DNA of 64,000 nucleotides from Perkinsela sp. CCAP 1560/9 (taxonomy: Eukaryota > Protista > Euglenozoa: Kinetoplastea), in contig CBFFSA010000027.1 in the NCBI GenBank assembly GCA_965644495.1, forward strand, positions 1 to 64,000, in the 5' to 3' direction. Of the stretch, positions 3,875-61,300 are shown in pieces. The notes below the pieces were generated by a model. It made no database searches and was not told the origin of the DNA. It saw only the letters and a program-made list of their open reading frames with translations. Position numbers and translations under genes: made by a program. How positions within the stretch are numbered: position 1 is the first letter of the stretch; every line of letters begins with the position of its first letter.

Positions 3875-4333
3875 TTGTTAAGACCCTTTCTTTTGTTAAG
3901 ACCCCTTCTATTGTTAAGACCCTTTCTTTTGTTAAGACCCTTTCTTTTGTTAAGACCCTTTCTTTTGTTAAGACCCTTTCTTTTGTTAAGACCCTTTCTT
4001 TTGTTATGACCCTTTCTTTTGTTAAGACCCTTTCTTTTGTTAAGACCCTTTCTTTTGTTAAGACCCTTTCTTTTGTTAAGACCCTTTCTTTTGTTAAGAC
4101 CCTTTCTTTTGTTAAGACCCTTTCTTTTGTTAAGACCCTTTCTTTTGTTAAGACCCTTTCTTTTGTTAAGACCCTTTCTTTTGTTAAGACCCTTTCTTTT
4201 GTTAAGACCCTTTCTTTTGTTAAGACCCTTTCTTTTGTTAAGACCCTTTCTTTTGTTAAGACCCTTTCTTTTGTTAAGACCCTTTCTTTTGTTAAGACCC
4301 TTTCTTTTGTTAAGACCCTTTCTTTTGTTAAGA
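3875..4333. repeat. Type 1 18-bp repeat, ~25.5 units
   Basis: Direct inspection. Confidence 0.97.
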
Positions 4334-26335: not shown

Positions 26336-28031
26336 AACAAAAACAAAGGTCTTAACAAAAGCCCGTGGAGCGCATATATTATATACGCGCCGATTACTAT
26401 CAAATGTTCACATTCTAATAAACTAATATCCCTTTCTTTTCTTAAGAAGTATTTGAGATGACAAGCTTAAAAACTTGTCCCAGTGTATTGGTCGTGAGCT
26501 AGAAACTGGCGGAGTTGAGCGTGGAGGATAGTTCCTGCCTGTTCCTGGTGGAGTAGCGTAAATGTTTCCATTACGCTGTGTCTCTCTAGCCCGCAACGGT
26601 CCGCAATAGCCCACAGGAGATTCCGAGTGGCGTTGTGCATGGAACCGCAGGACAGAACAGGGATACATTCAAAGCATTCCTTGTTTATCATGCCACTGTC
26701 AACATAGCGTACACGCTTGCGCTTTATCGCTTCGTTCATGAGGAATGTCGTATTGTGTTTGATATTCGAGGGAGCCAGTTCGTGAACTACTGTGAGGTCG
26801 TAGTATTTCTCTCCTGAAGCCCATTGAATTGCAAGGTCGGGGCCCGTGCGACGCAGAGTACTTCCAACACATGTCCTGGTATGTTCCGTTTTGTTTTCAG
26901 GGTGGATCGTGGCTGCGCACGCAGAGCACTCATAGTAACTGAACTGACGAGGTTCACGTTCACACGGCAATCCAGCTCGGAGGCATAGCTCGTAAAGGTA
27001 GCGAACAAGGGCATGATGCTTCGTAGTTACATTGTGTCCTGCACATTTGACGCATCCAGGTATGTGGGTTAGCGCTTCCGAGGAGCTTAGGAGCTTTTTG
27101 CATCCCGGGCATAGCAACGAGTTTGGCAGTTGTGGGTGGCTTATTTTTAGTCGTGACATGATGTTTAGCGTGTAGATGTGCGAAGGAATGATTTTGCGAT
27201 TCCCGATAAGCCATTCATAGCTCCCTTTCTTGCTGCAAGCTTTAATCGTCGGAGCCCACTCCTTGTTTTTGAGAAGATTTGTCTGGATTTCTGTGGCTCT
27301 TTTGGTCTCCGTCACCACCTCGTCCTCAGGTGTCTTATGTGATTCCTCCAACGTCCCTGCAGGTGCTGGCGGTTCCATGCGTTGTGCCATCCGAGCTGAA
27401 AAGGTTTTTTGATGCTCAAAAACGGCATGTCGCGATGAAGTGTACGCAGCGTTCCGCAAGGGTTCTGTTTCTGGAATACCCAATCCACCTTTCTTTAAAG
27501 GTAGTCTTGCTATCATTTCTTGCTCTGGACTCAGAGGTCCCAACCACGATGTGACGACATTCTTGATCTCGTGGTCAAATTTTTGCGCTAGCTCAAGTGA
27601 GGCCTCTGGTTTATGTACCCGTACGTGATAACGGTGCCGAACGTTTACGCTGCGCGATAGCAAAAGCAGGGACGCGTTGTTGGCACCCATCTTTTTAAGA
27701 CGTCTGAATATCGTATGGTGTTTTTCCAGCGTTCGGATTAATTCGGATCCTATGCGCTGTTCCTCCCCAACGAATGCACCCAGTACTTTAATGACTTCGC
27801 TCTCTGTACGCACACCTTCTTCTTTGAGGGTTGATGGAATGGGGGCGTCGCTTTTCCCTTCAAACCAGATGCATTTTTCGTTATTGAGTTGAATTCCTTC
27901 AGTGAGAAGCAGGGTTTGTAACCGGTGGTATGCCGCCTCGACCTCTTTTCCACTAGGAGAAGTGAGGCTGACGTCGTCGACGTAAGCTAGAACTTTGACG
28001 TTTGGAAATTCCTGCGCTATGGTCTCCAACA
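26336..28031 (-). mobile_element. Family F copy 1, 5'-truncated, inserted in B3
   Basis: RT C-terminal half + RLE; insert flanked by CTAGCAAC duplication (26278-26285, 28042-28049). Confidence 0.88.
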
Positions 28032-28032
28032 T
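26467..28032 (-). CDS. Partial RT (YVDD) + Zn-knuckle + RLE (family F)
   Basis: YVDD, LPLKKGGLG, CPGC..HIPGC..C, GPDL..YDLTVVH. Confidence 0.85.
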   Translation of the reverse strand: MLETIAQEFPNVKVLAYVDDVSLTSPSGKEVEAAYHRLQTLLLTEGIQLNNEKCIWFEGKSDAPIPSTLKEEGVRTESEVIKVLGAFVGEEQRIGSELIRTLEKHHTIFRRLKKMGANNASLLLLSRSVNVRHRYHVRVHKPEASLELAQKFDHEIKNVVTSWLGPLSPEQEMIARLPLKKGGLGIPETEPLRNAAYTSSRHAVFEHQKTFSARMAQRMEPPAPAGTLEESHKTPEDEVVTETKRATEIQTNLLKNKEWAPTIKACSKKGSYEWLIGNRKIIPSHIYTLNIMSRLKISHPQLPNSLLCPGCKKLLSSSEALTHIPGCVKCAGHNVTTKHHALVRYLYELCLRAGLPCEREPRQFSYYECSACAATIHPENKTEHTRTCVGSTLRRTGPDLAIQWASGEKYYDLTVVHELAPSNIKHNTTFLMNEAIKRKRVRYVDSGMINKECFECIPVLSCGSMHNATRNLLWAIADRCGLERHSVMETFTLLHQEQAGTILHAQLRQFLAHDQYTGTSF

Positions 28033-28888
28033 GGGGAAGGTCTAGCAACGAGCGGAAGGTTTCCCAAGGCGCCGGATCGCGTTCTCGACATCATAAAGGA
28101 CTGGGGAAAGGGTAGCACGTGCGAAATACGATGGGGATTCAATGAGAAAGAGACATATACCAGTGAAGGTGCGGTGTCCAAGAGAACGGTGCGTCGAGGT
28201 TTAGTGAAGCTCACGATTGCATACAAGCCTAAAGAGGGTAGCGAAGGACCCGCTGGTCTTCTTCACCTTCCGCAATCCGCGAAGATCAAAATTTGGTCGA
28301 TTAACGAAGTGAAGATTAACAAATCAAGACTCCCTCCGTTGAATCCGTAGAAGAGAAGAACTCAGACCTGAATGAAAGCTTTGAGACAGCGGACGACGGT
28401 TGCGACCTAGATCCCCTCCCCAGATTTTCGCAAATTGATTCTTCGTTCTCAGTACATGTTGTTGCAATTTTTCGCTCGATTATTGGTGCTTATCCGAAAG
28501 CCAAGACAGAATCAGAGAAATCCGCTATCTGGCACAAACTTTTAAATGCTCCCAGGGATTCTTTAGCAACTTGGAGGCATTTCTCCTGTGAAATCCTATG
28601 ACAGGAAGCCACGGGCGAAACATCACCTTCCCCCCTTCTCTCGTGAGAGAAACTACCTCCAAAAATAACTAGAACAGAACTTACAAGTAAATGAATAAAT
28701 AAATAGATAAATAGATACTTTCGTGTGAGAAAGATGATTCCGTTTTTTTTTTTGCAATTTTTTTTTTATTCTGTAATACGATCTATAACTTTTCTCTCTC
28801 CGTATCCCCCTAACGGGGATTCTGACTTTCTTCACTCACTTTTCAAATCGCGAGGAATTGGGTGGCCCGAATGTCGCTGCTGGTTGTC

Positions 28889-29375
28889 ATCCGTTGAAGT
28901 CGTGGCGCAGAAAACCTCACGAGCGAATTCACAAATGGTCCGAGCAGAAAGAAATTTTAGAGGCTCAAGAACTATCTGCAAATCCACTGCCGAGAGATGC
29001 GGTCCGGTACATCGAGAATACACCGATTTTCGTTTCCTGAGCAGAAAAGGATTTTTGGCGCTCGAAAGAAACACAAACATGATGTTAACCCAACGTCCCA
29101 TACGCAAACTCTGCGCAGCAGCTTTACGAATTGTACCTGTCGTCACGCACGTCGACTTGTCCCTCGGCACTTCGACATCCGTTGAAATCATAGCGCAAAG
29201 AACCCCGCAAAGAATGATTTGGCACATGGTCCGAGCAGAAAGAGATTTTAAAGGCTCAAGAACTATTTGCGACACATCCGTTGCCGAGATATGCGAACCT
29301 GCCCACCGAGAATACACCAACGCATTCTGTTTCCTGAGCAGAAAAGGACTTTTGGCGCTCGAAAGAAACATAAAC
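28889..29375 (-). repeat. ~290-bp degenerate duplication carrying four GAGC-N17-GCTC motifs; probable non-autonomous retrocopy (poly-T at 28743-28768)
   Basis: Motifs at 28942, 29039, 29233, 29336. Confidence 0.75.
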
Positions 29376-30049
29376 TTTTTTTTTTTTCGTACATGGAGAA
29401 AATCTTTGCCTCAACCGCCTCGACCGCCACCCGGTGTCCAACCGGAAGGCTTTTCTTGGTCGAGTGAGCTGGCCACCTTCCAGTGGCAAGATGAATGGGT
29501 GTTTCCACCCACGCACCTCAGGGGAGACACCCCATTACAGGGTAGTGCGAGACTTGCTTACCAGAGTTTTGTTGAATCTCGGATTGCGTCAGAGACTCTG
29601 GTAGCTCACTCGCTAAAAACTCCACTGCTCCGGATTGTTAGTCCAGGAGCGCTCCTAGCGTGGAGAAACGAAGGACCTAGCCTAGAAAAAAGGATCTAGT
29701 CCCTTCGCTTCTCCGGGAGATGGGGAGGGATAAAACCTCAGCTAGCACCAATGCCGTTCCACCTCCACCGAGGGGGTAGGGTTAGCGCGCTTGCTAACGA
29801 CATACATGCCTCGGCGACGGGATGCTACCCCGTCTATGCCCCGGAACGCGGTTAACGACGCCGCGAACAAGGGTTGAACAGGAATAGGAACGGACACATT
29901 CCCTCCTGCCAGCTCGGAAACCCTTACGTCGGAAGGCTGGGGTCGCCACGCCCCATCACCGGCAACGGTCCAATGCCGGGCTCCTGACCTCATCTTCCCC
30001 TTCTGACGCACCCAAAAGGATATGCCGTGGCAGTGGCGACCCAGTTAGG
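29376..30049 (-). ncRNA. Structured poly(A)+ non-coding RNA retrocopy; candidate repeat-template (telomerase-RNA-like) 3' domain
   Basis: T12 at 29376-29387, many hairpins, no credible ORF, runs directly into the type 2 repeat. Confidence 0.6.
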
Positions 30050-30926
30050 ATAAACAAAAAGGGGGTAATAAACAAAAAGGGGGTAATAAACAAAAAGGGG
30101 GTAATAAACAAAAAGGGGGTAATAAACAAAAAGGGGGTAATAAACAAAAAGGGGGTAATAAACAAAAAGGGGGTAATAAACAAAAAGGGGGTAATAAACA
30201 AAAAGGGGGTAATAAACAAAAAGGGGGTAATAAACAAAAAGGGGGTAATAAACAAAAAGGGGGTAATAAACAAAAAGGGGGTAATAAACAAAAAGGGGGT
30301 AATAAACAAAAAGGGGGTAATAAACAAAAAGGGGGTAATAAACAAAAAGGGGGTAATAAACAAAAAGGGGGTAATAAACAAAAAGGGGGTAATAAACAAA
30401 AAGGGGGTAATAAACAAAAAGGGGGTAATAAACAAAAAGGGGGTAATAAACAAAAAGGGGGTAATAAACAAAAACGGGGTAATAAACAAAAAGGGGGTAA
30501 TAAACAAAAAGGGGGTAATAAACAAAAAGGGGGTAATAAACAAAAAGGGGGTAATAAACAAAAAGGGGGTAATAAACAAAAAGGGGGTATAAACAAAAAG
30601 GGGGTAATAAACAAAAAGGGGGTAATAAACAAAAAGGGGGTAATAAACAAAAAGGGGGTAATAAACAAAAAGGGGGTAATAAACAAAAAGGGGGTAATAA
30701 ACAAAAAGGGGGTAATAAACAAAAAGGGGGTAATAAACAAAAAGGGGGTAATAAACAAAAAGGGGGTAATAAACAAAAAGGGGGTAATAAACAAAAAGGG
30801 GGTAATAAACAAAAAGGGGGTAATAAACAAAAAGGGGGTAATAAACAAAAAGGGGGTAATAAACAAAAAGGGGGTAATAAACAAAAAGGGGGTAATAAAC
30901 AAAAAGGGGGTAATAAACAAAAAGGG
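30050..30926. repeat. 18-bp tandem repeat type 2 (TAATAAACAAAAAGGGGG)n, ~49 units
   Basis: Direct inspection. Confidence 0.97.
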
Positions 30927-30927
30927 C

Positions 30928-32055
30928 TAGGGGGGACCTTCGATGAATCTTCATCGAAAGTTGTACACTTTCGATGAAGCACATCGAAAGTTGTACACTT
31001 TCGATGAATCTTCATCGAAGGTGTTTTTGACTTTTTTTGACTTTTTTAACTTTTTGTTTTTGAACGAATTTTTCCATTGGCTGTTGAAAACACGTTGCAT
31101 GAAACATATAATTTCATTTTAAATTCAATAATTTTTTGTTTTTTTGTCTGAATTCTGACTTTCCGTTTTTTTTCACATTTTGGCTTGGGGGTACGTTCGT
31201 TGATTTCTCAACGAACGTACCCTGTGACCGTAAAAAATCTGCAGGACCTTAGAGGGAGGAGGAAGAAAGGCCCAACTGATAACTACTTGATAATCTTGAT
31301 AATCTTGACCAACTACCTTGATAACAAATTTTAGTACCCATTCGTGGGAAGCAATTTGCGAAGCCCAACTACTTGATAACAAATTTTAGTACCCATTTTG
31401 GCCGCGCGGGGGCCCCCGCGTGAGCGGGGGTGCGCGCGGCCGCGAAACGGCGAGGGCCCGCGTGAGCGGGCCTGAGCCGTACCCCGCTTAGGGTTCCCCT
31501 GTGCGTCGTTAGTGGGAAGCAATTTGCGAAGCTCACTGAATTTCGTAGTTTTCGCTACGCAGGCGTTGTCAACGTATATAGCGAAGTGTAGGATACTGAA
31601 CGCACGGAAAATGAAAATCAAAAAAAATTCTTGGATGTTCCACAAAAGTCCTTGACTTATGCAAAAGTCCTTGATTTCCACCGTGAATTTCCGTTCGTTG
31701 AGTACTCAACGAAAATCCGGCACTTCGTTGAGTGCTCAACGAAAATCCTGTGTTTACCCCTTCCGCAGGATTGTCGCTCAAAATATGTATATGGATCAGT
31801 CAAAAACGCTTCGATGAAGATAAACTGAAGAAACGGTGAAATTCCTCTACGAGCCTTCACAAAACACTTCGATGATGCACCAAAAAAGTCAAAATGTCTA
31901 TATGCATCCGCGAAAAACGTTTGCGTGAAGATTTGAAAAAATAAAAAAAAAGTCAAAAACACCTTCGATGAAGATTCATCGAAAGTGTACAACTTTCAAT
32001 GTGCTTCATCGAAAGTTGTACACTTTCGATGAAGCTTCATCGAAGGTCCCCCCTA
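30928..32055. mobile_element. 1.13-kb non-coding element with ~110-bp terminal inverted repeats (MITE-like)
   Basis: TAGGGGGGACCTTCGATGAA... and ...TTCATCGAAGGTCCCCCCTA; internal palindromes and direct repeats; no ORF. Confidence 0.75.
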
Positions 32056-32058
32056 CCC

Positions 32059-32189
32059 ACAAAAAGGGGGTAATAAACAAAAAGGGCATTAGCCCTCATG
32101 CCGAGACTAGGGATCACACATCCAGATCTTCCTTCTCAACTGCTTTGCCCAGGATGTAACATTCTTTTGAAAGACGAATCAATATTGCC
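32059..32189 (-). ncRNA. Candidate template (~1.5 repeat units), boundary hairpin and 5' domain of the template RNA
   Basis: AGGGC-ATTA-GCCCT hairpin abuts the repeat; 32100-32107 can pair with 29808-29815. Confidence 0.5.
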
Positions 32190-32591
32190 TTTTTTTTTTG
32201 TTCTCTTCATCGAAGGTCCCCACTACCCAACATCATCTGGTATTTTTATCTTATGAGCCGTCATTACTGTTTTTTTTTTTGTGTTATCTTGTGTGCTTTT
32301 GGCCCGATTTCCGGAGTAACTTCAAAGATTCAGCATTGTAGACTTCCTACCCAATGTTCTTGGGCCATATATATAAACTTTTAGAACTTGATAAAATTGA
32401 TAACCATTGCACATACTCAGTTCCACTTTTTATCTATCTTTATCACCAATGACTGTCCTAAGATGTTGCAACGTCTTGAGATTAAAACCAAATCATCATC
32501 TAGCATTTTAGCTTATGTGCCGTCATCACTGTTTTTTTTTGTGTGTTATCTTGTGTGCTTTTGGCACGATTTCCGGAGTAACTTCAAAGAT

Positions 32592-35500
32592 TCAGCATTG
32601 CAGACTTCCTACCCAATGTTCTTGGGCCATATATTGCCGCAGTTGCGAGAAGATAGTGTATGCGGAGAATTTTTCAATTTCCAATTGGAATGCTTCTCGA
32701 GTGTTTTCTACGTCTAGGCCTGCCCTATTTGCCAGTGTCTTGAGGAGTTCCTTAGTTTCCTTGTGAAGAAGACCACAATCTGTTACTGGTATGCAGCGAA
32801 AGTATTCTTGGTCCAATCCTTTTTCCTGCACATATTTCCGTTGCTTACGGTCTACCGCATTTTGGAGGAGGGCAACGCTTGTCTGCCGCTTGTAGCTCCC
32901 ACAACAAGTGTGCACCACTGTCACATCGTAGAGTATCTCCCCAACATTTGGCCACATTATGGCCAGATCAGGGCCTGAACGAATTCTCCGAGCACGACAA
33001 GGATGATGTTCTGCAGCTTCAGGTGAAATGGAACATTTGCACTTCGTGCAGAAGAAGGAAGAATGAAGGCGTGGTTCTATAGCGCAGGGTACTCCAGCTT
33101 TGGCACAAAGATCGGAAAGGTAGCGCACGATGTGGGAGTGCTTTCTCGTACAGTTCATCCCTGCACATCTTGAACACCCAGCTACATGTGAAATGATTCC
33201 ATGTGGTGTTTCCGTGGCGCCGCATCCTGGACAAGTAATTTCATTCGGCGCACCTTGGAGTGCGATACCAAGCCGCATCATGAGTGTATATCGGAAGAGA
33301 TACGGATTCACGTAATTATTTGTCGCTGCCAAGTGGAGATTTGCTTCTTTTGATCGCTTCATAATGCCCGCAAATCTATCCTTTTGCATCAGTTCTGAAG
33401 CCAGTGTTTCATGTTCTAACTTAATCTGCTTTTTGAAATCAGTACGTGCAGCTTGGCTGGAAATTTTCTTGTGGTTGGCACCTTTCCGCTCTCCCGTGAT
33501 ATCTACTGGAGCGTTAGTGGGTTTAAGTTGCTCATCAATAGATTTACGGGAAATCGCAAAAAGATAGCGTTGCTTCAATATCGTCGATGTTATGCCTAAG
33601 CCGCCCATCTTACATGGTAGAGAAGCTAGTCGGAGGGCTTCATCATCTGCATTGCACCATCGTCTCAACACTTTGTGGATTTCTTTATCAAATACCTCAG
33701 CGAGGGAAAACGTTGCCTCTGGAACGTGCACTCTAAGATGATAATCGTGACGTGGAAGAGTACACCGACGCAGGATTGCTAGCGACAGGTTACTTGGCCC
33801 CATCACCCGCAGACGACGAAAAAGGCATTCATGTTTACTCAGCTTTTCAATCAGTTTATGTTCCACAACTTTCGCACTTCCTATGTATCCACCTAACACT
33901 TTGATGGACTGTTCGCATGTTGTGACGCCAAGCTCCTTGAGGTTGGTTTTATTTAATACTTCGTTTGTGTTTCGGAACCACTCGCATTTTCCGTAGTTTA
34001 TATGTAAATTCAAATCCTGGGTAAGTTCACGTAAATGATGAAAAGCTGCCTCCAGTGACTTTACATTCTTTGAGCTCATTGTAACGTCGTCTTGGTACGC
34101 TCGAATTTTTACTTCGGGATAATTTTTGGAGACCTCCTTCAACGGTTGTTGCAGGAGAGAGCAAAAATAGAGCGATGAAAGTGCTGATCCCTGTCTTACT
34201 CCTGAAGAACTTTCTATAATCGAGTGTAATGCATTATTGGCGAAGAAAAGGAGTTCGGAAGGCTGGCCATATTCTAGATAAAAAAGCCGCATGAAGTGTT
34301 TAAAGATCGGCTCCTTAAGCAGTGATTTCGCTATTTCCGTACGATGTGGCGTATTATAAGCATTCTTGAAATCAACTGTGAGTATAGTGTATCCGTCTTT
34401 TCGTTCCTCTAACAACTCATGCACTATTGACTCACAGGCTCTTTCTTGTAGAATACCCCGTTGGATTGGCTGGAAAAGGGTTTTGAGGGAGCTTTCGTGT
34501 CTGTTTAAGAGAATCGAACCGCATATTTTTAGAATTGTGTCGCCCATTGCAACTGGTCGTATGCCGTTTTGCGGCTTTGCTAGAGCAATTATTCTGCAGC
34601 GTGTCAGTCGTTTACGTACGCTTTCTGCCACATCACCATTTATGACGTCACGAAACATGTGGCAAAGCGCTAGGCAGGATTCCTCATCTTCCACTAAAAG
34701 TCGCATCATGCTTTCGCTGAAGCCTGTTGGTCCCGGCGCTGCTCCTCGAGATAGTTTTTCTGTTGCCACCCGAAGCTCTGATTGCTCAACTACCCCAATT
34801 CGTGGAAAATCTTCTTCTAAACGTTTGGGGGTGGGTCCTGTAGGATGGAGCTCTTTCAACTTGAAAACTTTCTCATGCGGTTCTAGAGATGACTCTCGGT
34901 ATACATTGTCCAAAATCCGTGTTGCTTTACTCAAATTTCCTGCTTTTGCTGCTGTCAGTGCGTTTCTTATTGACCGCTGATCGATTGCAAGTTCTTGACG
35001 TTGTTCTTCACTCAGATTTTGGTCATCTAAGAGCTCGCGGTGTCTACGGCGGTGGGCTGAACTCTGTTTTCTTTTCAAAGTGAGACGAACTGTGGCCAGC
35101 GAATCCCTTGGAGCATCCAGTAATTTGTGCCATATGGCAGTTTTCTCTGATTCTAAAATGGTTTTAGGGTAGTCTCGTACAATGGATCGGAAGATGGCTA
35201 CTACATGAACTCCAAATGATGGATCGATTTGAACGAATGTCGGTAGAGGTTCATAGTCTCGGTTATTCTCGGCGCTTTCTTCTTCTTCGTCTTGATCTTC
35301 ATTCTTCTCGTCCAGGAAATTCCCAATCGCCTTTATCTTATTCAGCTTAACAGCACCTAGCGACCATATTTTAATTCTGTCTGACGGCGGTAAGTGTAGG
35401 ATACCTTGTGGACCCTCTCCTTTCCCCTCCTTATAAGAAATCTGAATCTTTACCATTCCTTTCCGTGAGGATCTTTTTACGACTTCGCCAACGGAGTGAT

Positions 35501-36053
35501 ACATCTCTTTATTCCTGCTAAATCCCCATCGCACCTCGCAAGTCGTACCTTTGCCCCATTCTCTAATAATTTGTTGGACTTGGTCAGGGGCTTTTGCGAA
35601 ACATGGGTTGCTCTTGTTTTCTTCACCGTCTGTCGACATAGAATCCGATTGTGTCGCTTTTTCGTCTTCGGACTTTGAGGCGTTCGATTCATCATTTTCC
35701 GAAGTTTCTATATCGATATTTCCTCGTTCAATTCTGTTTCGCATCGTGTATCTCTTCAACTTGATGAGATTCGAATTCTTCGCTTCTACTTGATCATGAA
35801 TTTCGTGGTCAGCCCAAATTGGAGAAATGTCTTTTCCTGTGCTTTGACTGATAACCCTAATTCGTGGTGTCTTCTTGGGTTTCGGTGCGGTCTCACTTTT
35901 ATTGTAGCTCGGCTCGGTGATTCTGGTGTTCGGAGAAGCTCTACAGCGTCCTTCGCTACAATCATCCTTCCGGGTAGCTTGCAGAAAATTTCCCGATGTC
36001 GCCCCGATGTCGTCCGTGAAGTGTTTTCCAAATCTCGCTTGACGAGCGAACAT
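32592..36053 (-). CDS. RT + Zn-knuckle + RLE polyprotein, 1153 aa (B2)
   Basis: RPVAMGD, VDFKNAYN, GVRQGSALS, YQDD, CPGC..HVAGC..C, GPDL..YDVTVVH..RK. Confidence 0.93.
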   Translation of the reverse strand: MFARQARFGKHFTDDIGATSGNFLQATRKDDCSEGRCRASPNTRITEPSYNKSETAPKPKKTPRIRVISQSTGKDISPIWADHEIHDQVEAKNSNLIKLKRYTMRNRIERGNIDIETSENDESNASKSEDEKATQSDSMSTDGEENKSNPCFAKAPDQVQQIIREWGKGTTCEVRWGFSRNKEMYHSVGEVVKRSSRKGMVKIQISYKEGKGEGPQGILHLPPSDRIKIWSLGAVKLNKIKAIGNFLDEKNEDQDEEEESAENNRDYEPLPTFVQIDPSFGVHVVAIFRSIVRDYPKTILESEKTAIWHKLLDAPRDSLATVRLTLKRKQSSAHRRRHRELLDDQNLSEEQRQELAIDQRSIRNALTAAKAGNLSKATRILDNVYRESSLEPHEKVFKLKELHPTGPTPKRLEEDFPRIGVVEQSELRVATEKLSRGAAPGPTGFSESMMRLLVEDEESCLALCHMFRDVINGDVAESVRKRLTRCRIIALAKPQNGIRPVAMGDTILKICGSILLNRHESSLKTLFQPIQRGILQERACESIVHELLEERKDGYTILTVDFKNAYNTPHRTEIAKSLLKEPIFKHFMRLFYLEYGQPSELLFFANNALHSIIESSSGVRQGSALSSLYFCSLLQQPLKEVSKNYPEVKIRAYQDDVTMSSKNVKSLEAAFHHLRELTQDLNLHINYGKCEWFRNTNEVLNKTNLKELGVTTCEQSIKVLGGYIGSAKVVEHKLIEKLSKHECLFRRLRVMGPSNLSLAILRRCTLPRHDYHLRVHVPEATFSLAEVFDKEIHKVLRRWCNADDEALRLASLPCKMGGLGITSTILKQRYLFAISRKSIDEQLKPTNAPVDITGERKGANHKKISSQAARTDFKKQIKLEHETLASELMQKDRFAGIMKRSKEANLHLAATNNYVNPYLFRYTLMMRLGIALQGAPNEITCPGCGATETPHGIISHVAGCSRCAGMNCTRKHSHIVRYLSDLCAKAGVPCAIEPRLHSSFFCTKCKCSISPEAAEHHPCRARRIRSGPDLAIMWPNVGEILYDVTVVHTCCGSYKRQTSVALLQNAVDRKQRKYVQEKGLDQEYFRCIPVTDCGLLHKETKELLKTLANRAGLDVENTREAFQLEIEKFSAYTIFSQLRQYMAQEHWVGSLQC

Positions 36054-36080
36054 GTTTAAGTAATCTCAATAAAAAAAAAT

Positions 36081-36115
36081 CAACAAGGTACAGAAACTGT
36101 ATCTTTATCGTTAAA
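36081..36115 (-). other. Spliced-leader exon, near full length
   Basis: TTTAACGATAAAGATACAGTTTCTGTACCTTGTTG shares AACG...ACAGTTTCTGTAC...TTG with trypanosomatid SL. Confidence 0.88.
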
Positions 36116-37001
36116 AAGGGGGTAATAAACAAAAAGGGGGTAATAAACAAAAAGGGGGTAATAAACAAAAAGGGGGTAATAAACAAAAAGGGGGTAATAA
36201 ACAAAAAGGGGGTAATAAACAAAAAGGGGGTAATAAACAAAAAGGGGGTAATAAACAAAAAGGGGGTAATAAACAAAAAGGGGGTAATAAACAAAAAGGG
36301 GGTAATAAACAAAAAGGGGGTAATAAACAAAAAGGGGGTAATAAACAAAAAGGGGGTAATAAACAAAAAGGGGGTAATAAACAAAAAGGGGGTAATAAAC
36401 AAAAAGGGGGTAATAAACAAAAAGGGGGTAATAAACAAAAAGGGGGTAATAAACAAAAAGGGGGTAATAAACAAAAAGGGGGTAATAAACAAAAAGGGGG
36501 TAATAAACAAAAAGGGGGTAATAAACAAAAAGGGGGTAATAAACAAAAAGGGGGTAATAAACAAAAAGGGGGTAATAAACAAAAAGGGGGTAATAAACAA
36601 AAAGGGGGTAATAAACAAAAAGGGGGTAATAAACAAAAAGGGGGTAATAAACAAAAAGGGGGTAATAAACAAAAAGGGGGTAATAAACAAAAAGGGGGTA
36701 ATAAACAAAAAGGGGGTAATAAACAAAAAGGGGGTAATAAACAAAAGGGGGGTAATAAACAAAAAGGGGGTAATAAACAAAAAGGGGGTAATAAACAAAA
36801 AGGGGGTAATAAACAAAAAGGGGGTAATAAACAAAAAGGGGGTAATAAACAAGAAGGGGGTATAAACAAAAAGGGGGTAATAAACAAAAAGGGGGTAATA
36901 AACAAAAAGGGGGTAATAAACAAAAAGAGGGTAATAAACAAAAAGGGGGTAATAAACAAAAAGGGGGTAATAAACAAAAAGGGGGTAATAAACAAAAAGG
37001 G
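36113..37001. repeat. Type 2 18-bp repeat, ~49 units
   Basis: Direct inspection; exits into CATTAGCCCTCATGCC. Confidence 0.97.
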
Positions 37002-37149
37002 CATTAGCCCTCATGCCATTTTGTATTTGAATAGTCCCTAAGCACATACACATCCGTTAATAACTTTTCTAATGAATTTACGAAATCAATCAATCAGCAG
37101 TCCCAGCCACGTCTATCTGGAATATTTATTTATTTATTTATTTATTTAT

Positions 37150-38845
37150 AACAAAAACAAAGGTCTTAACAAAAGCCCGTGGAGCGCATATATTATATAC
37201 GCGCCGATTACTATCAAATGTTCACATTCTAATAAACTAATATCCCTTTCTTTTCTTAGGAAGTATTTGAGATGACAAGCTTAAAAACTTGTCTCAGTGT
37301 ATTGGTCGTGAGCTAGAAACTGGCGGAGTTGAGCGTGGAGGATACTTCCTGCCTGTTCCTGGTGGAGTAGCGTAAATGTTTCCATTACGCTGTGTCTCTC
37401 TAGCCCGCAACGGTCCGCAATAGCCCACAGGAGATTTCGAGTGGCGTTGTGCATGGAACCGCAGGACAGAACAGGGATACATTCAAAGCATTCCTTGTTT
37501 ATCATGCCACTGTCAACATAGCGTACACGCTTGCGCTTTATCGCTTCGTTCATGAGGAATGTCGTATTGTGTTTGATATTCGAGGGAGCCAGTTCGTGAA
37601 CTACTGTGAGGTCGTAGTATTTCTCTCCTGAAGCCCATTGAATTGCGAGGTCGGGGCCCGTGCGACGCAGAGTACTTCCAACACATGTCCTGGTATGTTC
37701 CGTTTTGTTTTCAGGGTGGATCGTGGCTGCGCACGCAGAGCACTCATAGTAACTGAACTGACGAGGTTCACGTTCACACGGCAATCCAGCTCGGAGGCAT
37801 AGCTCGTAAAGGTAGCGAACAAGGGCATGATGCTTCGTAGTTACATTGTGTCCTGCACATTTGACGCATCCAGGTATGTGGGTTAGCGCTTCCGAGGAGC
37901 TTAGGAGCTTTTTGCATCCCGGGCATAGCAACGAGTTTGGCAGTTGTGGGTGGCTTATTTTTAGTCGTGACATGATGTTTAGCGTGTAGATGTGCGAAGG
38001 AATGATTTTGCGATTCCCGATAAGCCATTCATAGCTCCCTTTCTTGCTGCAAGCTTTAATCGTCGGAGCCCACTCCTTGTTTTTGAGAAGATTTGTATGG
38101 ATTTCTGTGGCTCTTTTGGTCTCCGTCACCACCTCGTCCTCAGGTGTCTTATGTGATTCCTCCAACGTCCCTGCAGGTGCTGGCGGTTCCATGCGCTGTG
38201 CCATCCGAGCTGAAAAGGATTTTTGATGCTCAAAAACGGCATGTCGCGATGAAGTGTACGCAGCGTTCCGCAAGGGTTCTGTTGCTGGAATACCCAATCC
38301 ACCTTTCTTTAAAGGTAGTCTTGCTATCATTTCTTGCTCTGGACTCAGAGGTCCCAACCACGATGTGACGACATTCTTGATCTCGTGGTCAAATTTTCGC
38401 GCTAGCTCAAGTGAGGCCTCTGGTTTATGTACCCGTACGTGATAACGGTGCCGAACGTTTACGCTGCGCGATAGCAAAAGCAGGGACGCGTTGTTGGCAC
38501 CCATCTTTTTAAGACGTCTGAATATCGTATGGTGTTTTTCCAGCGTTCGAATTAATTCGGATCCTATGCGCTGTTCCTCCCCAACGAATGCACCCAGTAC
38601 TTTAACGACTTCGCTCTCTGTACGCACACCTTCTTCTTTGAGTGTTGATGGAATGGGGGCGTCGCTTTTCCCTTCAAACCAGATGCATTTTTCGTTATTG
38701 AGTTGAATTCCTTTAGTGAGAAGCAGGGTTTGTAACCGGTGGTATGCCGCCTCGACCTCTTTTCCACTAGGAGAAGTGAGGTTGACGTCGTCGACGTAAG
38801 CTAGAACTTTGACGTTTGGAAATTCCTGCGCTATGGTCTCCAACA
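37150..38845 (-). mobile_element. Family F copy 2, 5'-truncated (ORF 37281 to ~38843)
   Basis: Near-identical to 26336-28031 with the same truncation point; (ATTT)n at its 3' junction. Confidence 0.88.
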
Positions 38846-39004
38846 AAAAGGGGGTAATAAACAAAAAGGGGGTAATAAACAAAAAGGGGGTAATAAACAA
38901 AAAGGGGGTAATAAACAAAAAGGGGGTAATAAACAAAAAGGGGGTAATAAACAAAAAGGGGGTAATAAACAAAAAGGGGGTAATAAACAAAAAGGGGGTA
39001 ATAA
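38842..39004. repeat. Type 2 18-bp repeat, ~9 units
   Basis: Direct inspection. Confidence 0.96.
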
Positions 39005-39934: not shown

Positions 39935-42900
39935 AGTGGAGCGCATATATTATATACGCGCCGATTACTATCAAATGTGAGACATGTTCACCTTCCCCCC
40001 TTCTCTCAATTTTCAAAGAGAAACTATCCCGAAAATGAAATCTATATAATTTTATAAGCTGACTCAGCTTATAGTGATATTGTGTTTAGAACTTATATAC
40101 TATATTCTTGAGTTTGCGTGCAGCCGTCTAAGTATTTCTTTAGCTGCGCATAAATCCCTAATCCATTAAGCTCCTGAATCGTCAGCTTCATTTCGAGTTC
40201 GACCTGTTTCCTGTTTAGCATGGCCGCGTCTGCTAGCGAGTGTACCAAGTTCTGCGTATTGCGGTGCAAAGCGCCTCCTGCCAGTACGGGTAAACATTGA
40301 AATGAGTCTTCACGAATTAAGTTCGTACGTACATATGTGTTGGACTTTCGCTGCAGCGCGTCATTCATGAGCTGTGTGCATTTCTTTCCACGATTAGACA
40401 TTGAGAGTTCGTGAATAACTGTCAGATCATAGAAGACCGCACCCGTGTTCCAATAGATCACGAGATCGGGGCCAGACCGACAAAGTTTTTTTCCTGCACA
40501 AGTCTTCTGATGTACCAACTGGTTTTCCGGACTGATTGTGGATCGGCAAGCGATGCACTTCCACGTAGAAAAGTTTCTAGGTTCCGTTTCACATGGGATG
40601 CCTGCTTTCACGCATAGACGATGTAAAAATCCGACAAGTGAGTTATGTTTCACGGTCGTATTTATACCTGAACATTGAGCACAGCCTGGGATATGGGTGA
40701 GGGCGTTTCGGTTATTGAGGAGAATACCGCACCCTGGACACAATAGACTGGTAGGTAGATCTGGGTGTTGGGCATTTAGTCGTGGCATAATCGCGAGTTT
40801 GAAGAGATGGGAAGGGATGTACTTCGCGTTGGAAAGGATCCAGTCGCTGTTTCCTTTGAAGGATGTGGCTTGTAGAATGGGCTTAATGTCGGGATCCGTT
40901 TGCAACTCTTTCAATACTTCGACATGATGAATGCTGGTGGAAGCTTTTTCGTCCACTGGTATGACTTTCATTGTCGAGTTCTTAGGAATAGACGGGTGTG
41001 ATGGCACCGCGTTGTCGATCCGAGCTGAAAAAGAGTTTCGGCGCTCAAGAACCGAGTAGCGGGATGCCACATATGCCGTCTCCCTAAGGGGACTGCTCGC
41101 TGTCAAACCCATTCCTCCCTTCTTAACGGGTAATCGTACAATTTTCATTTGATCAGGAGAGAGTGGACCAATCCAAGTCTCTACCACATTTTCAACCTCT
41201 TGATCGAATTGTGATGATGCTTTCTCTGTTGTTTCGGGCGGGTGGACACGAATCAGGTATTGTTGACGAACATTGGCACATTTTGCTAAAAGAATCATCG
41301 ATATATTATTGATGCCCATTCGTTTTAGCCGCCGAAAAGCTGTGACCTGCTTCTCTAGTTGACGCAAAAGTCGTTCACTTATTGTGTTGTTTTCTCCAAT
41401 ATACGCTCCGAGTACTTTGACCGCTTCGTCCTCCGACTTTACACCTTGGGTGCTCAGCGAATTCGGTATGGAATTTCCGGATTTTCCTCTGAACCAAACG
41501 CATTTTGCCTCGGCTAGTTTCACCTGTTTTTCTTCTAGGAGACCTTTGAGCCTAAAGAATGCTTTCTCCAGTTCGGTTGAATCTCGAGACACTAACGTTA
41601 TATCGTCAATGTATGCATTTATTTCAATACCTGGAAATTCGGAGGCCAGTGTCTCGAGTATTGGTTGACAGAATACGCAAAAGTAAAGACTAGCCAGAGC
41701 GGACCCTTGCCGTACACCTGCTGAGCTCATTATAATGTCCGTCAGGCTGCCATCGGAGCCATAAAATAAAAGTTCGGAAGCATTTGAATATTCGGCCGCA
41801 AAGAACCTTTGAAAGGGTTTCAGTGTAGCGAAAGCAAAAACGCACTTTGCAATTTCCTCTCGTGAGGGTGAGTTGAATGCATTTTGCATATCCACAGTCA
41901 GGATTGAGTGTCCGTCAAGCCAGCGGTCCCGCAACTTGTGTACGATTCGTTCGCACCCCGCTTGAGAGAATACGCCTTGTTGCATTGGTGCAAAGAGGGG
42001 TTCCAGTGACTTTTCGTATCTTTGCAGCAGAATTATTCCAGCTAATTTGCTAAATATTTCTCCAATAGCTACTGGGCGTACTCCCCCGTTGGGCTTGTCG
42101 ATGGCTACGAGTCTTGCCCGATTTAGACGCTGTAGAACTTGTCTAGATAGGAATCCGTTGATCAGATCGCTCATCATGTGACAAAGACTATTGCAACATG
42201 GCTCGTCGTCTATGAGAAGTCTAACGATGCTGTCGGTCGTACCTGTAGGCCCAGGGCTCACACCTTTTGCCAGTCGTCTACTTGCACATCTTAATTCTTG
42301 TACGGCTATTCCTGCGATAATCGGTGCATCTTCCGGAACTTTGAAATTGCAGTTTTGTTCTGGATGAAGTGCACGTAGTTTTTGGACTTTTTCTTGATCA
42401 GTCAACGTGCTCTTCTGAAAAGAACAGTCCAAAATCCTTGAAGCCTTCGATGTACAGTTTTCTAGCACCAAACGAGTGGCCCGTTTGATTGCTCGCTTGT
42501 CCTCATGAAAAAACTCGTCTTCTGGTTGATTGTGTTCAACTGTCTCTTGTTGTATGGGTCTTCGCCGCCGTTGTCTACTATTGGCTTGACGCACAGAAGC
42601 TAATGAAAGTTTCATTGCAGACAAAACTTTATTCCAAATTTGATTTCTTTGTACGTAGTCGCTTTCTGCATAGATGTGCATGATGTCCCTGTATATGGCA
42701 ATCACACTGGAGATAAAATCAGGACTAATGGTTTTCGCGGTTGGAATTGGGAGATGGTCTACGTCTGCAGCTCCTGTGTCCAGCTTAAGCGCTCTGGCCT
42801 TTTTAACATGTGTTTCTTCGCGGGTCTCAATAGGAAGGTTCTCGTCAATGGCTGGAGGAGCTCTGTACCAACGGATCTGATATACACGGATATTTTCTTG

Positions 42901-43906
42901 CGGAGGAAGAAAACCTGGAAAACTTTCTTCTGCACGATGGCCGAACAGACCTTTATAGCTCAAATGTAGTTTCGACGCCCCGGTCCGATTCGCGGATCGT
43001 GTTACGGTTCCTTCGGAGATGTTCAAGGCGGTTTGTTTATCGAATGTCCACGCCACTGTGCATTTGGTTCCTTTTTTTATTGAAGAACAAGACTTCTGTA
43101 TGCGCTCGAAAGGAATGGGGAATTCGGTGTCTGGATTTATCGATTTTATGATGCCACCGATGTGGTTGTCTTGTTCCGGATTTCCTTCGCTATAAAGTAT
43201 GCTGATGACTTGATTTGTTGTTTCAGTTGGTTTGTCCTTTTCTTGTGTGTCTGGCGTGATGCAGTCGTAGAACTCGGTGTTACTTCCATACTCCTTGGTT
43301 TTGGGGCCCGGAGTCGTGCTAATTACCTGTATTTCGCTCGATGTGTCAGGTCGGAAACCTTCGTCGCCGTTGGGCGCAATTTCGCCGTACTGAATCGGTT
43401 CGTTGTTTTGTACGCGTCCGTTTTCCTGGACGTTCTTTGTACTCTTGTTGTGCTCGTTTTCCTTTTGGATGATAGCATCCTGCAGAACTTTAGCCTTCTT
43501 ACGGTAACTGTCCATGGCAACGGCCGACGGATTTAACGGTCGTAAAACGAGTTCATCCAGAGTAGTGGGATCTTTTGGTGGAGGGGTGGCCGCCTGAGCG
43601 TACGTTGGTTCCTTGCTCCAGTTCGTAAATGCTGTGTTCCGAGCGGTGTTCGTTCTTATTTTGATGCATCCTTCTGGGTGACGAATGGTTGGGCTCTCGT
43701 CTTGCGACACTTTGTCAGCTCTTGTCTGAAGAAGGTTGAGTTGTTTGTTTCGCCGATTGAAGAAATTTGAAGACAGCAGTGCGTTCTTAATTGTGACTTT
43801 GCAGTCACTTTTCGGCAGTGGGGTCGGCGATCGACGCATCGACGGAGGAGGAGATTGTGGACACTCAGATGGCGTTGATGGTGGTGACTCAGATGGCGTT
43901 GATGGT
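39935..43906 (-). mobile_element. Family C copy 1, nested in D with TGGCCA duplication
   Basis: TGGCCA at 39929-39934 and 43907-43912. Confidence 0.9.
40093..43839 (-). CDS. RT + Zn-knuckle + RLE polyprotein, 1248 aa (family C, slightly 5'-truncated)
   Basis: RPVAIGE, VDMQNAFN, GVRQGSALA, YIDD, CPGC..HIPGC..C, GPDL..YDLTVIH. Confidence 0.92.
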   Translation of the reverse strand: MRRSPTPLPKSDCKVTIKNALLSSNFFNRRNKQLNLLQTRADKVSQDESPTIRHPEGCIKIRTNTARNTAFTNWSKEPTYAQAATPPPKDPTTLDELVLRPLNPSAVAMDSYRKKAKVLQDAIIQKENEHNKSTKNVQENGRVQNNEPIQYGEIAPNGDEGFRPDTSSEIQVISTTPGPKTKEYGSNTEFYDCITPDTQEKDKPTETTNQVISILYSEGNPEQDNHIGGIIKSINPDTEFPIPFERIQKSCSSIKKGTKCTVAWTFDKQTALNISEGTVTRSANRTGASKLHLSYKGLFGHRAEESFPGFLPPQENIRVYQIRWYRAPPAIDENLPIETREETHVKKARALKLDTGAADVDHLPIPTAKTISPDFISSVIAIYRDIMHIYAESDYVQRNQIWNKVLSAMKLSLASVRQANSRQRRRRPIQQETVEHNQPEDEFFHEDKRAIKRATRLVLENCTSKASRILDCSFQKSTLTDQEKVQKLRALHPEQNCNFKVPEDAPIIAGIAVQELRCASRRLAKGVSPGPTGTTDSIVRLLIDDEPCCNSLCHMMSDLINGFLSRQVLQRLNRARLVAIDKPNGGVRPVAIGEIFSKLAGIILLQRYEKSLEPLFAPMQQGVFSQAGCERIVHKLRDRWLDGHSILTVDMQNAFNSPSREEIAKCVFAFATLKPFQRFFAAEYSNASELLFYGSDGSLTDIIMSSAGVRQGSALASLYFCVFCQPILETLASEFPGIEINAYIDDITLVSRDSTELEKAFFRLKGLLEEKQVKLAEAKCVWFRGKSGNSIPNSLSTQGVKSEDEAVKVLGAYIGENNTISERLLRQLEKQVTAFRRLKRMGINNISMILLAKCANVRQQYLIRVHPPETTEKASSQFDQEVENVVETWIGPLSPDQMKIVRLPVKKGGMGLTASSPLRETAYVASRYSVLERRNSFSARIDNAVPSHPSIPKNSTMKVIPVDEKASTSIHHVEVLKELQTDPDIKPILQATSFKGNSDWILSNAKYIPSHLFKLAIMPRLNAQHPDLPTSLLCPGCGILLNNRNALTHIPGCAQCSGINTTVKHNSLVGFLHRLCVKAGIPCETEPRNFSTWKCIACRSTISPENQLVHQKTCAGKKLCRSGPDLVIYWNTGAVFYDLTVIHELSMSNRGKKCTQLMNDALQRKSNTYVRTNLIREDSFQCLPVLAGGALHRNTQNLVHSLADAAMLNRKQVELEMKLTIQELNGLGIYAQLKKYLDGCTQTQEYSI

Positions 43907-46119: not shown

Positions 46120-46211
46120 TAATAAACAAAAAGGGGGTAATAAACAAAAAGGGGGTAATAAACAAAAAGGGGGTAATAAACAAAAAGGGGGTAATAAACA
46201 AAAAGGGGGTA
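46120..46211. repeat. Type 2 18-bp repeat, ~5 units
   Basis: Direct inspection. Confidence 0.95.
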
Positions 46212-58305: not shown

Positions 58306-61300
58306 TTTTTTTTTTGCCCGTGGAGCGCATATATTATATACGCGCCGATTACTATCAAATGTGAGACATGTTCACCTTCCCCCCTTCTCTCAATTTTCAA
58401 AGAGAAACTATCCCGAAAATGAGATCTATATAATTTTATAAGCTGATTCAGCTTATAGTGATATTGTGTTTAGAACTTATATACTATATTCTTGAGTTTG
58501 CGTGCAGCCGTCTAAGTATTTCTTTAGCTGCGCATAAATCCCTAATCCATTAAGCTCCTGAATCGTCAGCTTCATTTCGAGTTCGACCTGTTTCCTGTTT
58601 AGCATGGCCGCGTCTGCTAGCGAGTGTACCAAGTTCTGCGTATTGCGGTGCAAAGCGCCTCCTGCCAGTACGGGTAAACATTGAAATGAGTCTTCACGAA
58701 TTAAGTTACTCCACGAGCCAAAAGACTCGACAACCATGGCCGTGAACCCTAGTTGTGCTTCTTCTTTTTTTTTTTTTTTTTTTTTTTTAGGTCCTCGCCG
58801 GTGTTCTCTTCATCGAAGGTCCCCACTACCCAACATCATCTGGTATTTTTATCTTATGAGCCGTCATTACTGTTTTTTTTTGTGTTATCTTGTGTGCTTT
58901 TGGCCCGATTTCCGGAGTAACTTCAAAGATTCAGCATTGTAGACTTCCTACCCAATGTTCTTGGGCCATATATATAAACTTTTAGAACTTGATAAAATTG
59001 ATAACCATTGCACATACTCAGTTCCACTTTTTACCTATCTTTATCACCAATGTCTGTCCTAAGATGTTGCAACGTCTTGAGATTAAAACCAAATCATCAT
59101 CTAGCATTTTAGCTTATGTGCCGTCATCACTGTTTTTTTTTTGTGTGTTATCTTGTGTGCTTTTGGCACGATTTCCGGAGTAACTTCAAAGATTCAGCAT
59201 TGCAGACTTCCTACCCAATGTTCTTGGGCCATATATTGCCGCAGTTGCGAGAAGATAGTGTATGCGGAGAATTTTTCAATTTCCAATTGGAATGCTTCTC
59301 GAGTGTTTTCTACGTCTAGGCCTGCCCTATTTGCCAGTGTCTTGAGGAGTTCCTTAGTTTCCTTGTGAAGAAGACCACAATCTGTTACTGGTATGCAGCG
59401 AAAGTATTCTTGGTCCAATCCTTTTTCCTGCACATATTTCCGTTGCTTACGGTCTACCGCATTTTGGAGGAGGGCAACGCTTGTCTGCCGCTTGTAGCTC
59501 CCACAACAAGTGTGCACCACTGTCACATCGTAGAGTATCTCCCCAACATTTGGCCACATTATGGCCAGATCAGGGCCTGAACGAATTCTCCGAGCACGAC
59601 AAGGATGATGTTCTGCAGCTTCAGGTGAAATGGAACATTTGCACTTCGTGCAGAAGAAGGAAGAATGAAGGCGTGGTTCTATAGCGCAGGGTACTCCAGC
59701 TTTGGCACAAAGATCGGAAAGGTAGCGCACGATGTGGGAGTGCTTTCTCGTACAGTTCATCCCTGCACATCTTGAACACCCAGCTACATGTGAAATGATT
59801 CCATGTGGTGTTTCCGTGGCGCCGCATCCTGGACAAGTAATTTCATTCGGCGCACCTTGGAGTGCGATACCAAGCCGCATCATGAGTGTATATCGGAAGA
59901 GATACGGATTCACGTAATTATTTGTCGCTGCCAAGTGGAGATTTGCTTTTTTGATCGCTTCATAATGCCCGCAAATCTATCCTTTTGCATCAGTTCTGAA
60001 GCCAGTGTTTCATGTTCTAACTTAATCTGCTTTTTGAAATCAGTACGTGCGGCTTGGCTGGAGGATTAAGTTCGTACGTACATATGTGTTGGACTTTCGC
60101 TGCAGCGCGTCATTCATGAGCTGTGTGCATTTCTTTCCACGATTAGACATTGAGAGTTCGTGAATAACTGTCAGATCATAGAAGACCGCACCCATGTTCC
60201 AATAGATCACGAGATCGGGGCCAGACCGACAAAGTTTTTTTCCTGCACAAGTCTTCTGATGTACCAACTGGTTTTCCGGACTGATTGTGGATCGGCAAGC
60301 GATGCACTTCCACGTAGAAAAGTTTCTAGGTTCCGTTTCACATGGGATGCCTGCTTTCACGCATAGACGATGTAAAAATCCGACAAGTGAGTTATGTTTC
60401 ACGGTCGTATTTATACCTGAACATTGAGCACAGCCTGGGATATGGGTGAGGGCGTTTCGGTTATTGAGGAGAATACCGCACCCTGGACACAATAGACTGG
60501 TAGGTAGATCTGGGTGTTGGGCATTTAGTCGTGGCATAATCGCGAGTTTGAAGAGATGGGAAGGGATGTACTTCGCGTTGGAAAGGATCCAGTCGCTGTT
60601 TCCTTTGAAGGATGTGGCTTGTAGAATGGGCTTAATGTCGGGATCCGTTTGCAACTCTTTCAATACTTCGACATGATGAATGCTGGTGGAAGCTTTTTCG
60701 TCCACTGGTATGACTTTCATTGTCGAGTTCTTAGGAATAGACGGGTGTGATGGCACCGCGTTGTCGATCCGAGCTGAAAAAGAGTTTCGGCGCTCAAGAA
60801 CCGAGTAGCGGGATGCCACATATGCCGTCTCCCTAAGGGGACTGCTCGCTGTCAAACCCATTCCTCCCTTCTTAACGGGTAATCGTACAATTTTCATTTG
60901 ATCAGGAGAGAGTGGACCAATCCAAGTCTCTACCACATTTTCAACCTCTTGATCGAATTGTGATGATGCTTTCTCTGTTGTTTCGGGCGGGTGGACACGA
61001 ATCAGGTATTGTTGACGAACATTGGCACATTTTGCTAAAAGAATCATCGATATATTATTGATGCCCATTCGTTTTAGCCGCCGAAAAGCTGTGACCTGCT
61101 TCTCTAGTTGACGCAAAAGTCGTTCACTTATTGTGTTGTTTTCTCCAATATACGCTCCGAGTACTTTGACCGCTTCGTCCTCCGACTTTACACCTTGGGT
61201 GCTCAGCGAATTCGGTATGGAATTTCCGGATTTTCCTCTGAACCAAACGCATTTTGCCTCGGCTAGTTTCACCTGTTTTTCTTCTAGGAGACCTTTGAGC

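Follow-up and report, generated by a model that had tools for sequence, protein, structure and literature searches.

The window analysed here comprises the first 64 kb (64,000 nucleotides) of contig CBFFSA010000027.1 (C27) in the 21 Mb assembly GCA_965644495.1 of Perkinsela sp. CCAP 1560/9, and within it the region 29376–32189 is a nested mosaic rather than a single retrocopy. As every reverse transcriptase (RT) gene in the window sits on the minus strand, the minus strand is taken as RNA sense. On this strand, a poly(A) tail of A12 (29376–29387; T12 on the plus strand), located where the full-length copies of a retroposon end with A7–A28, adjoins the structured ORF-less body of this non-autonomous retroposon, 662 nt in length (29388–30049), of which at least 12 copies with 96–100% identity occur on different contigs. 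The native 5′ head of the RNA, a single 18-nt unit TACCCCCTTTTTGTTTAT in RNA sense (30050–30067, minus strand), is followed by the main part of an array of such reiterated 5′ units (30068–30923, minus strand), detected by TRF and including two variant units. A MITE-like element of 1,135 bp (30924–32058) lies inside the array, the 5′-most 1.2 units of which, recognized by sequence, are found at 32066–32086 on the minus strand. Beyond them, a plus-strand LINE ORF fragment of 103 bp from a CCHC zinc-knuckle region (32087–32189) shows 99% identity to C3:382009–382111. The sequence-only reading had combined these components into a retrocopy of a telomerase-RNA-like template, and its observations of the T12 stretch, the self-complementary ORF-less body of ~660 nt, the intervening inverted-repeat element and all named RNA-sense hairpins are accurate.

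The 18-mer array is reported by TRF at 30050–30926 as 48.8 units with 99% matches, consistent with the ~49 units counted before, and 48.5 units lie between 30050 and the edge of the inserted element at 30923. Its units are real, but the terminal GGGC previously ascribed to the array represents the first four bases of the insertion. With terminal inverted repeats of ~120 nt (94% identity), a 7-bp target duplication ACAAAAA at 30917–30923 and 32059–32065 and no transposase (no ORF of at least 150 aa is present within 30985–32058), the stretch 30924–32058 is a MITE. After subtraction of the MITE and one copy of the duplication the array runs uninterrupted over 895 nt, or 49.7 units; the MITE landed after the array had formed and split it. 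Behind the MITE there are 1.2 units rather than the ~1.5 units proposed, while the adjoining palindrome GGGC-ATTA-GCCC exists as described. A short-read contig (run X2) covers 32006–32115 with zero differences and crosses the array/flank junction unchanged, so that this junction is no assembly artefact.

On its right side, at 32189, the flank borders directly on the A10 tail (32190–32199) of LINE-B, an autonomous LINE on the minus strand (32190–36112; RVT_1, E = 2e-20; designated B2 in the sequence-only reading), whose 3′ end is established by another copy at 58802. It consists further of an RT ORF (32592–36053, minus strand, RVT_1) and, recognized by sequence, a spliced-leader relic (36081–36112, minus strand). 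Protein Atlas and PDB searches revealed a LINE-type RT and nothing more; an AP endonuclease domain is not detectable in the LINEs here, and in our own reading the window LINEs appear to combine a CCHC motif with a PD..D..K region. LINE-B is capped by a second array of 49.4 units (36113–37001, minus strand) with the same junction as the first array, followed by 16 nt of LINE fragment (37002–37017, minus strand) identical to 32087–32102. Because of this common 16-nt junction and the near-equal unit number (49.4 versus 49.7), the second array was probably copied from the first array with its flank, for which a long target duplication or repair synthesis would be the route.

Two shorter arrays, likewise on the minus strand and recognized by sequence, cap 5′-truncated LINEs of a second and a third family, namely nine units starting with ATTACCCCC at 38842–39004 and five units starting with TACCCCC at 46120–46211. 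Both caps adjoin exactly the points at which the LINEs are 5′-truncated, and these two LINEs are 35–37% identical to LINE-B and 42% identical to each other. The second array is present in one of seven LINE-B copies, being absent from the other six, which rules it out as a LINE-encoded feature. Another copy, 99% identical to the LINE at 32592–36053 (L041, C52:42287–45747), has a different cap, consisting of the 14-nt repeat CTAATATACTATAA and an adjoining partial leader. As the same unit caps LINEs with 35–37% identity, but occurs on only one of seven LINE-B copies while another copy carries the 14-nt repeat, the array is not encoded by the LINEs. Arrays as insertion targets were likewise considered and ruled out, as an array was never seen behind a poly(A) tail. 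One LINE family is represented at 27950–28050 and 38800–38841 by copies with 99% identity which break off at the same base, one being array-capped and the other joined to unrelated sequence.

The element at the core of the mosaic is a ~680-nt non-coding, polyadenylated and strongly structured retroposon. A genome search retrieved at least 12 full-length near-identical dispersed copies (96–100% identity, 12 contigs) besides truncated and diverged ones, and several copies are surrounded by clean target duplications of 8–11 bp (GTAAGAAAG, TGTGCAATCGA and GTTCCCCA); dispersed copies, poly(A), target duplications and lack of coding capacity characterize a non-autonomous non-LTR element. The window copy itself is without target duplication. 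The body holds no stop-free stretch longer than 102 aa in any frame, folds far more stably than its shuffled versions (z = -8.2) and possesses a core which is kept in relatives of ~72% identity with 11 compensatory base pairs. It has no blastx match to the window LINE ORFs and matches nothing else within the window, and Rfam searches over 29300–37300 with E up to 1 gave no family match for the retroposon, only chance hairpin matches in the MITE ends. Three loci on contigs C5, C10 and C3 (L020, L021 and L022) hold retroposon core bases 66–488 at ~72% identity within a family whose conserved stretch is bordered by an inverted repeat of ~10 nt, and judged from these copies a structured RNA module may be common to a DNA transposon and the retroposon.

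In nine of the 12 full-length copies there is exactly one 18-nt unit, located at the extreme 5′ end, with TA, ATA or ATTA in front of it and unrelated flanks beyond, which provides the source form with at most two units that the sequence-only reading had predicted. One copy (L008) begins at body base 3 with zero units, and long arrays are restricted to two full-length copies, the window copy with 49.7 units and a copy on contig C17 with ~78 units. The RNA of the element starts with one unit, (AU)UACCCCCUUUUUGUUUAU, a 5′ end deduced from DNA copies only; the sequence is absent from one doubtful RNA run, and four further runs, all of one study and of unrecorded type, are probably DNA. Among the Rfam families there is no match to the head of a strict SINE (tRNA, 7SL or 5S with a Pol III promoter), and the head contains T5, a Pol III terminator. 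An HDV-like ribozyme, Pr77 included, has no Rfam match at base 1 either, in a class that sequence models often miss; an HDV-like fold at the RNA start was also searched for by eye and dropped, as the best helices start elsewhere than at base 1.

In trypanosomatids, RIME and NARTc are the non-autonomous partners of the LINEs ingi and L1Tc (PMC3383444, PMC3185411). The retroposon resembles them in role, as a short, non-coding, polyadenylated element with a precise 5′ end and target duplications which uses LINE machinery in a kinetoplastid-type genome. On the other hand, it has no end in common with any LINE seen here, neither a detectable 5′ nor a 3′ end, the genome matches beside RT genes being chimeras or neighbours; moreover, Pr77 or HDV-like ribozymes are not recognized by Rfam and the LINEs are without detectable AP endonuclease. 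We know of no report of RIME or NARTc with reiterated 5′ units.

For the 103-bp flank, the sequence-only reading had assumed that it forms the 5′ region of one continuous RNA, in which a boundary hairpin precedes an internal template of 1.5–2 units and a 660-nt 3′ domain, and that an RT escaped through the boundary while copying it. The palindrome indeed abuts the array, and the identical 16 nt behind the first and the second window array would be expected if the flank belonged to the RNA. Yet the flank is an in-frame, stop-free plus-strand ORF segment with a CCHC zinc knuckle, and the palindrome falls within its LINE codons. The one other copy of the flank, on C3, resides in a long plus-strand ORF ~48% identical to the LINE ORF at 40093–43839 and continues into more ORF with no adjoining array; a retroposon copy 1.8 kb away on C3 bears one unit and is flanked by a target duplication of its own. 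A 19-mer tested in this connection occurs only three times in the genome, the flank is joined to the body in no other full-length copy, nine of which begin at the unit itself, and the C17 array stops directly at a target duplication. The proposed pairing of 32100–32107 with 29808–29815 is at chance level, with five such 8-bp flank-body helices compared to 4.4 when the flank is shuffled. The flank is an ORF fragment of an unrelated, oppositely oriented LINE that served as insertion target and lies outside the retroposon RNA.

The expectation that the repeat caps chromosome ends is not borne out either, with the unit at none of 39 sampled contig ends, which need not be true chromosome ends. The lack of an Rfam family match speaks weakly in the same direction, as telomerase RNAs diverge fast. 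A search for the TERT RNA-binding domain PF12009 gave no match and says little, as its controls were silent too, and four consecutive TTAGGG units do not occur in the assembly, a result treated as uninformative. An architecture of internal template, 5′ boundary helix and core-enclosing helix is contradicted by the nine copies starting at the unit and by the LINE origin of the flank, and a telomerase-RNA-like cDNA is considered highly improbable. As to the contig ends themselves, the starts of C6 and C9 and the end of C17 (L075, L078 and L106) consist of 12–13-nt C7-9TGGA(T/C) repeats, while others stop in 17–18-bp arrays or purine-rich repeats.

That the array belongs to the insertion follows from the C17 copy, in which a 10-bp target duplication, CAGCCTAGAT, surrounds ~78 units, the body and A18. 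In a diverged copy (L013) the duplication CCTAT(AA), 5–7 bp in length, encloses three extra units together with the native unit. The two array-bearing full-length copies have no private substitutions in common, which indicates that their arrays arose independently from a single-unit source. An array-bearing master that is transcribed through and passes varying unit numbers to its daughters would account for the variation between copies, and read-through transcription is the rule in kinetoplastids. However, the array-bearing copies form no subfamily, nine of 12 copies show exactly one unit with the same start base, and the arrays on truncated LINEs of other families are left unexplained, so that inheritance of arrays is judged quite improbable.

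An alternative is that the arrays are ordinary minisatellites which expanded from the 5′ unit once the element had inserted, through replication slippage or unequal exchange. On C17 the 5′ end of the array shows eight identical variant units of 17 nt in one block, beside one 18-nt variant, and this block counts against a constant template unless the template end changed; speculatively, these units at the last-made end of the array could reflect a template one base shorter. Copying of arrays in the DNA itself takes place as well, as proven by a segmental duplicate on C17 (L109 versus L039; C17:196500–199500 and 205000–214999) which comprises at least 1.18 kb of flank and the first ~37 units and in which the array continues into unrelated sequence; the second window array equally has the appearance of a copy of the first. 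On the other hand, the single-unit copies hold no second unit to seed slippage, and the array-bearing copies are among the youngest, with two to five private changes in 661 nt, yet possess 50 and ~78 nearly perfect units. [quoted passage not shown] Post-insertion growth is therefore regarded as unlikely.

Of four independent arrays, three start at (AT)TACCCCC, in register with the 5′ end of the single-unit copies, which is expected from run-off at the RNA 5′ end. Both LINE caps begin at the same (AT)TACCCCC, a pattern that fits run-off on the RNA and not an array copied from DNA. In addition, retroposon bases 1–412 are joined to the 3′ part of a LINE in a chimera (L014), which shows template switching from LINE RNA onto retroposon RNA. 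Short stutters of their own 5′ ends in copies headed by the spliced leader (L056, L063, L043 and L044) suggest that re-copying is a general habit of these RTs.

Judged by these sequence features, the array most likely arose when a retroelement RT re-copied the terminal 18 nt of the RNA many times at the 5′ junction. [quoted passage not shown] If the RNA starts with AUUA, the AU of bases 1–2 recurs at bases 19–20, which would provide 1.1 units of terminal redundancy for re-pairing and a unit of exactly 18 nt. Once the RT had switched templates, this RNA end probably also templated the arrays which cap the cDNAs of other LINEs, and the retroposon RNA end may thus also act as template in trans. 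[quoted passage not shown]

As a whole, a nested mosaic with a retroposon core, an RT-reiterated 5′ unit and capping in trans after template switching is considered the probable explanation. Against it stand the window copy without target duplication, the confinement of arrays of at least two units to two genome neighbourhoods, this window (C27) and one C17 region, all of them internal, as well as the DNA-level copying, the 17-nt block on C17 and an autonomous partner not having been found. The more far-reaching proposition, that the 5′ end is a telomerase-like terminal template of which LINE RTs re-copy the first 18 nt dozens of times in cis and in trans, so that a parasitic RNA writes arrays onto insertions of several families, is put forward tentatively, as a possibility we would sooner doubt than assume.

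Telomerase RNA and TERT similarly copy a short RNA stretch many times into a pure tandem array, and the redundancy of ~1.1 units could realign the product. In contrast to telomerase, a mobile RNA provides the template with its extreme 5′ end, without boundary element, the product resides within target duplications at internal sites and not at chromosome ends, and a LINE RT is the most probable enzyme. RT synthesis past the RNA end, variable junctions and chimeras recall the template jumping of R2 and R1, in which, however, the known 5′-junction additions consist of a few untemplated nucleotides or result from a jump onto the 3′ end of a different RNA (PMC2718515), in contrast to the 50–78 ordered repeats of the terminal 18 nt here. 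The bacterial defence RT DRT2 repeatedly copies a short template within a structured non-coding RNA into concatemeric cDNA (PMC12039810), which is the feature in common. This system, however, serves defence in prokaryotes, relies on a longer template and a stem-guided, rolling-circle-like jump, and is unconnected with transposition. In the literature consulted, no report was found of LINEs that reiteratively copy 5′-terminal RNA, which is no proof of absence. The I factor, CR1 and UnaL2 acquire 3′-end repeats by RT slippage at initiation, with units of 3–8 nt in few copies. Common to these elements and the retroposon would be RT slippage on a terminal RNA repeat that results in tandem units at the element end; the difference is that their repeats are at the 3′ end while the long arrays are at the 5′ end.

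If true, a non-LTR RT would make repeats processively in a telomerase-like manner from the last 18 nt of an RNA, which would constitute a functional bridge between retrotransposon RTs and telomerase. Equally, if true, minisatellites would have a new source, and the family-specific 17–19-bp arrays across the genome could be explained in this way. For annotation, the retroelement-adjoining arrays here are to be treated as parts of insertions and not as separate satellites, and neighbouring fragments of nested elements can mimic an RNA architecture, which calls for caution.

Besides the retroposon, a spliced-leader-like mini-exon heads hundreds of retro-copies in this genome (395 first-look candidates), in line with the hundreds of spliced-leader gene fragments, some beside retrotransposons, reported in the Perkinsela genome paper (PMC5601477). 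With the core CAGTTTCTGTACCTTGTTG (36081–36112, the 57903 region and loci L041–L069), it heads many LINE copies, often right after the poly(A) of another element. In one copy (L046) a full leader is followed by a partial one, which suggests that repeated rounds of trans-splicing and retroposition may have taken place. A second 18-bp repeat occurs between five tandem LINE units (196–405, 3875–4333 and onwards, with a period of ~3,925 bp), in which the stop of the RT ORF lies within ~10 nt of the next array without poly(A). The unit of this second repeat resembles the first bases of the spliced leader, and at one locus (L052) the array passes directly into the leader in this same register. The 3′ end of another LINE family (26336–26407 and 37150–37215) holds about two units of the second repeat in the orientation opposite to the arrays. 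On contig C1, tandem units of 5.09 kb (L110, C1:2474500–2484400) each carry four related 18-mers, CACCCCCTTTTTGTTTAT, which head a different element.
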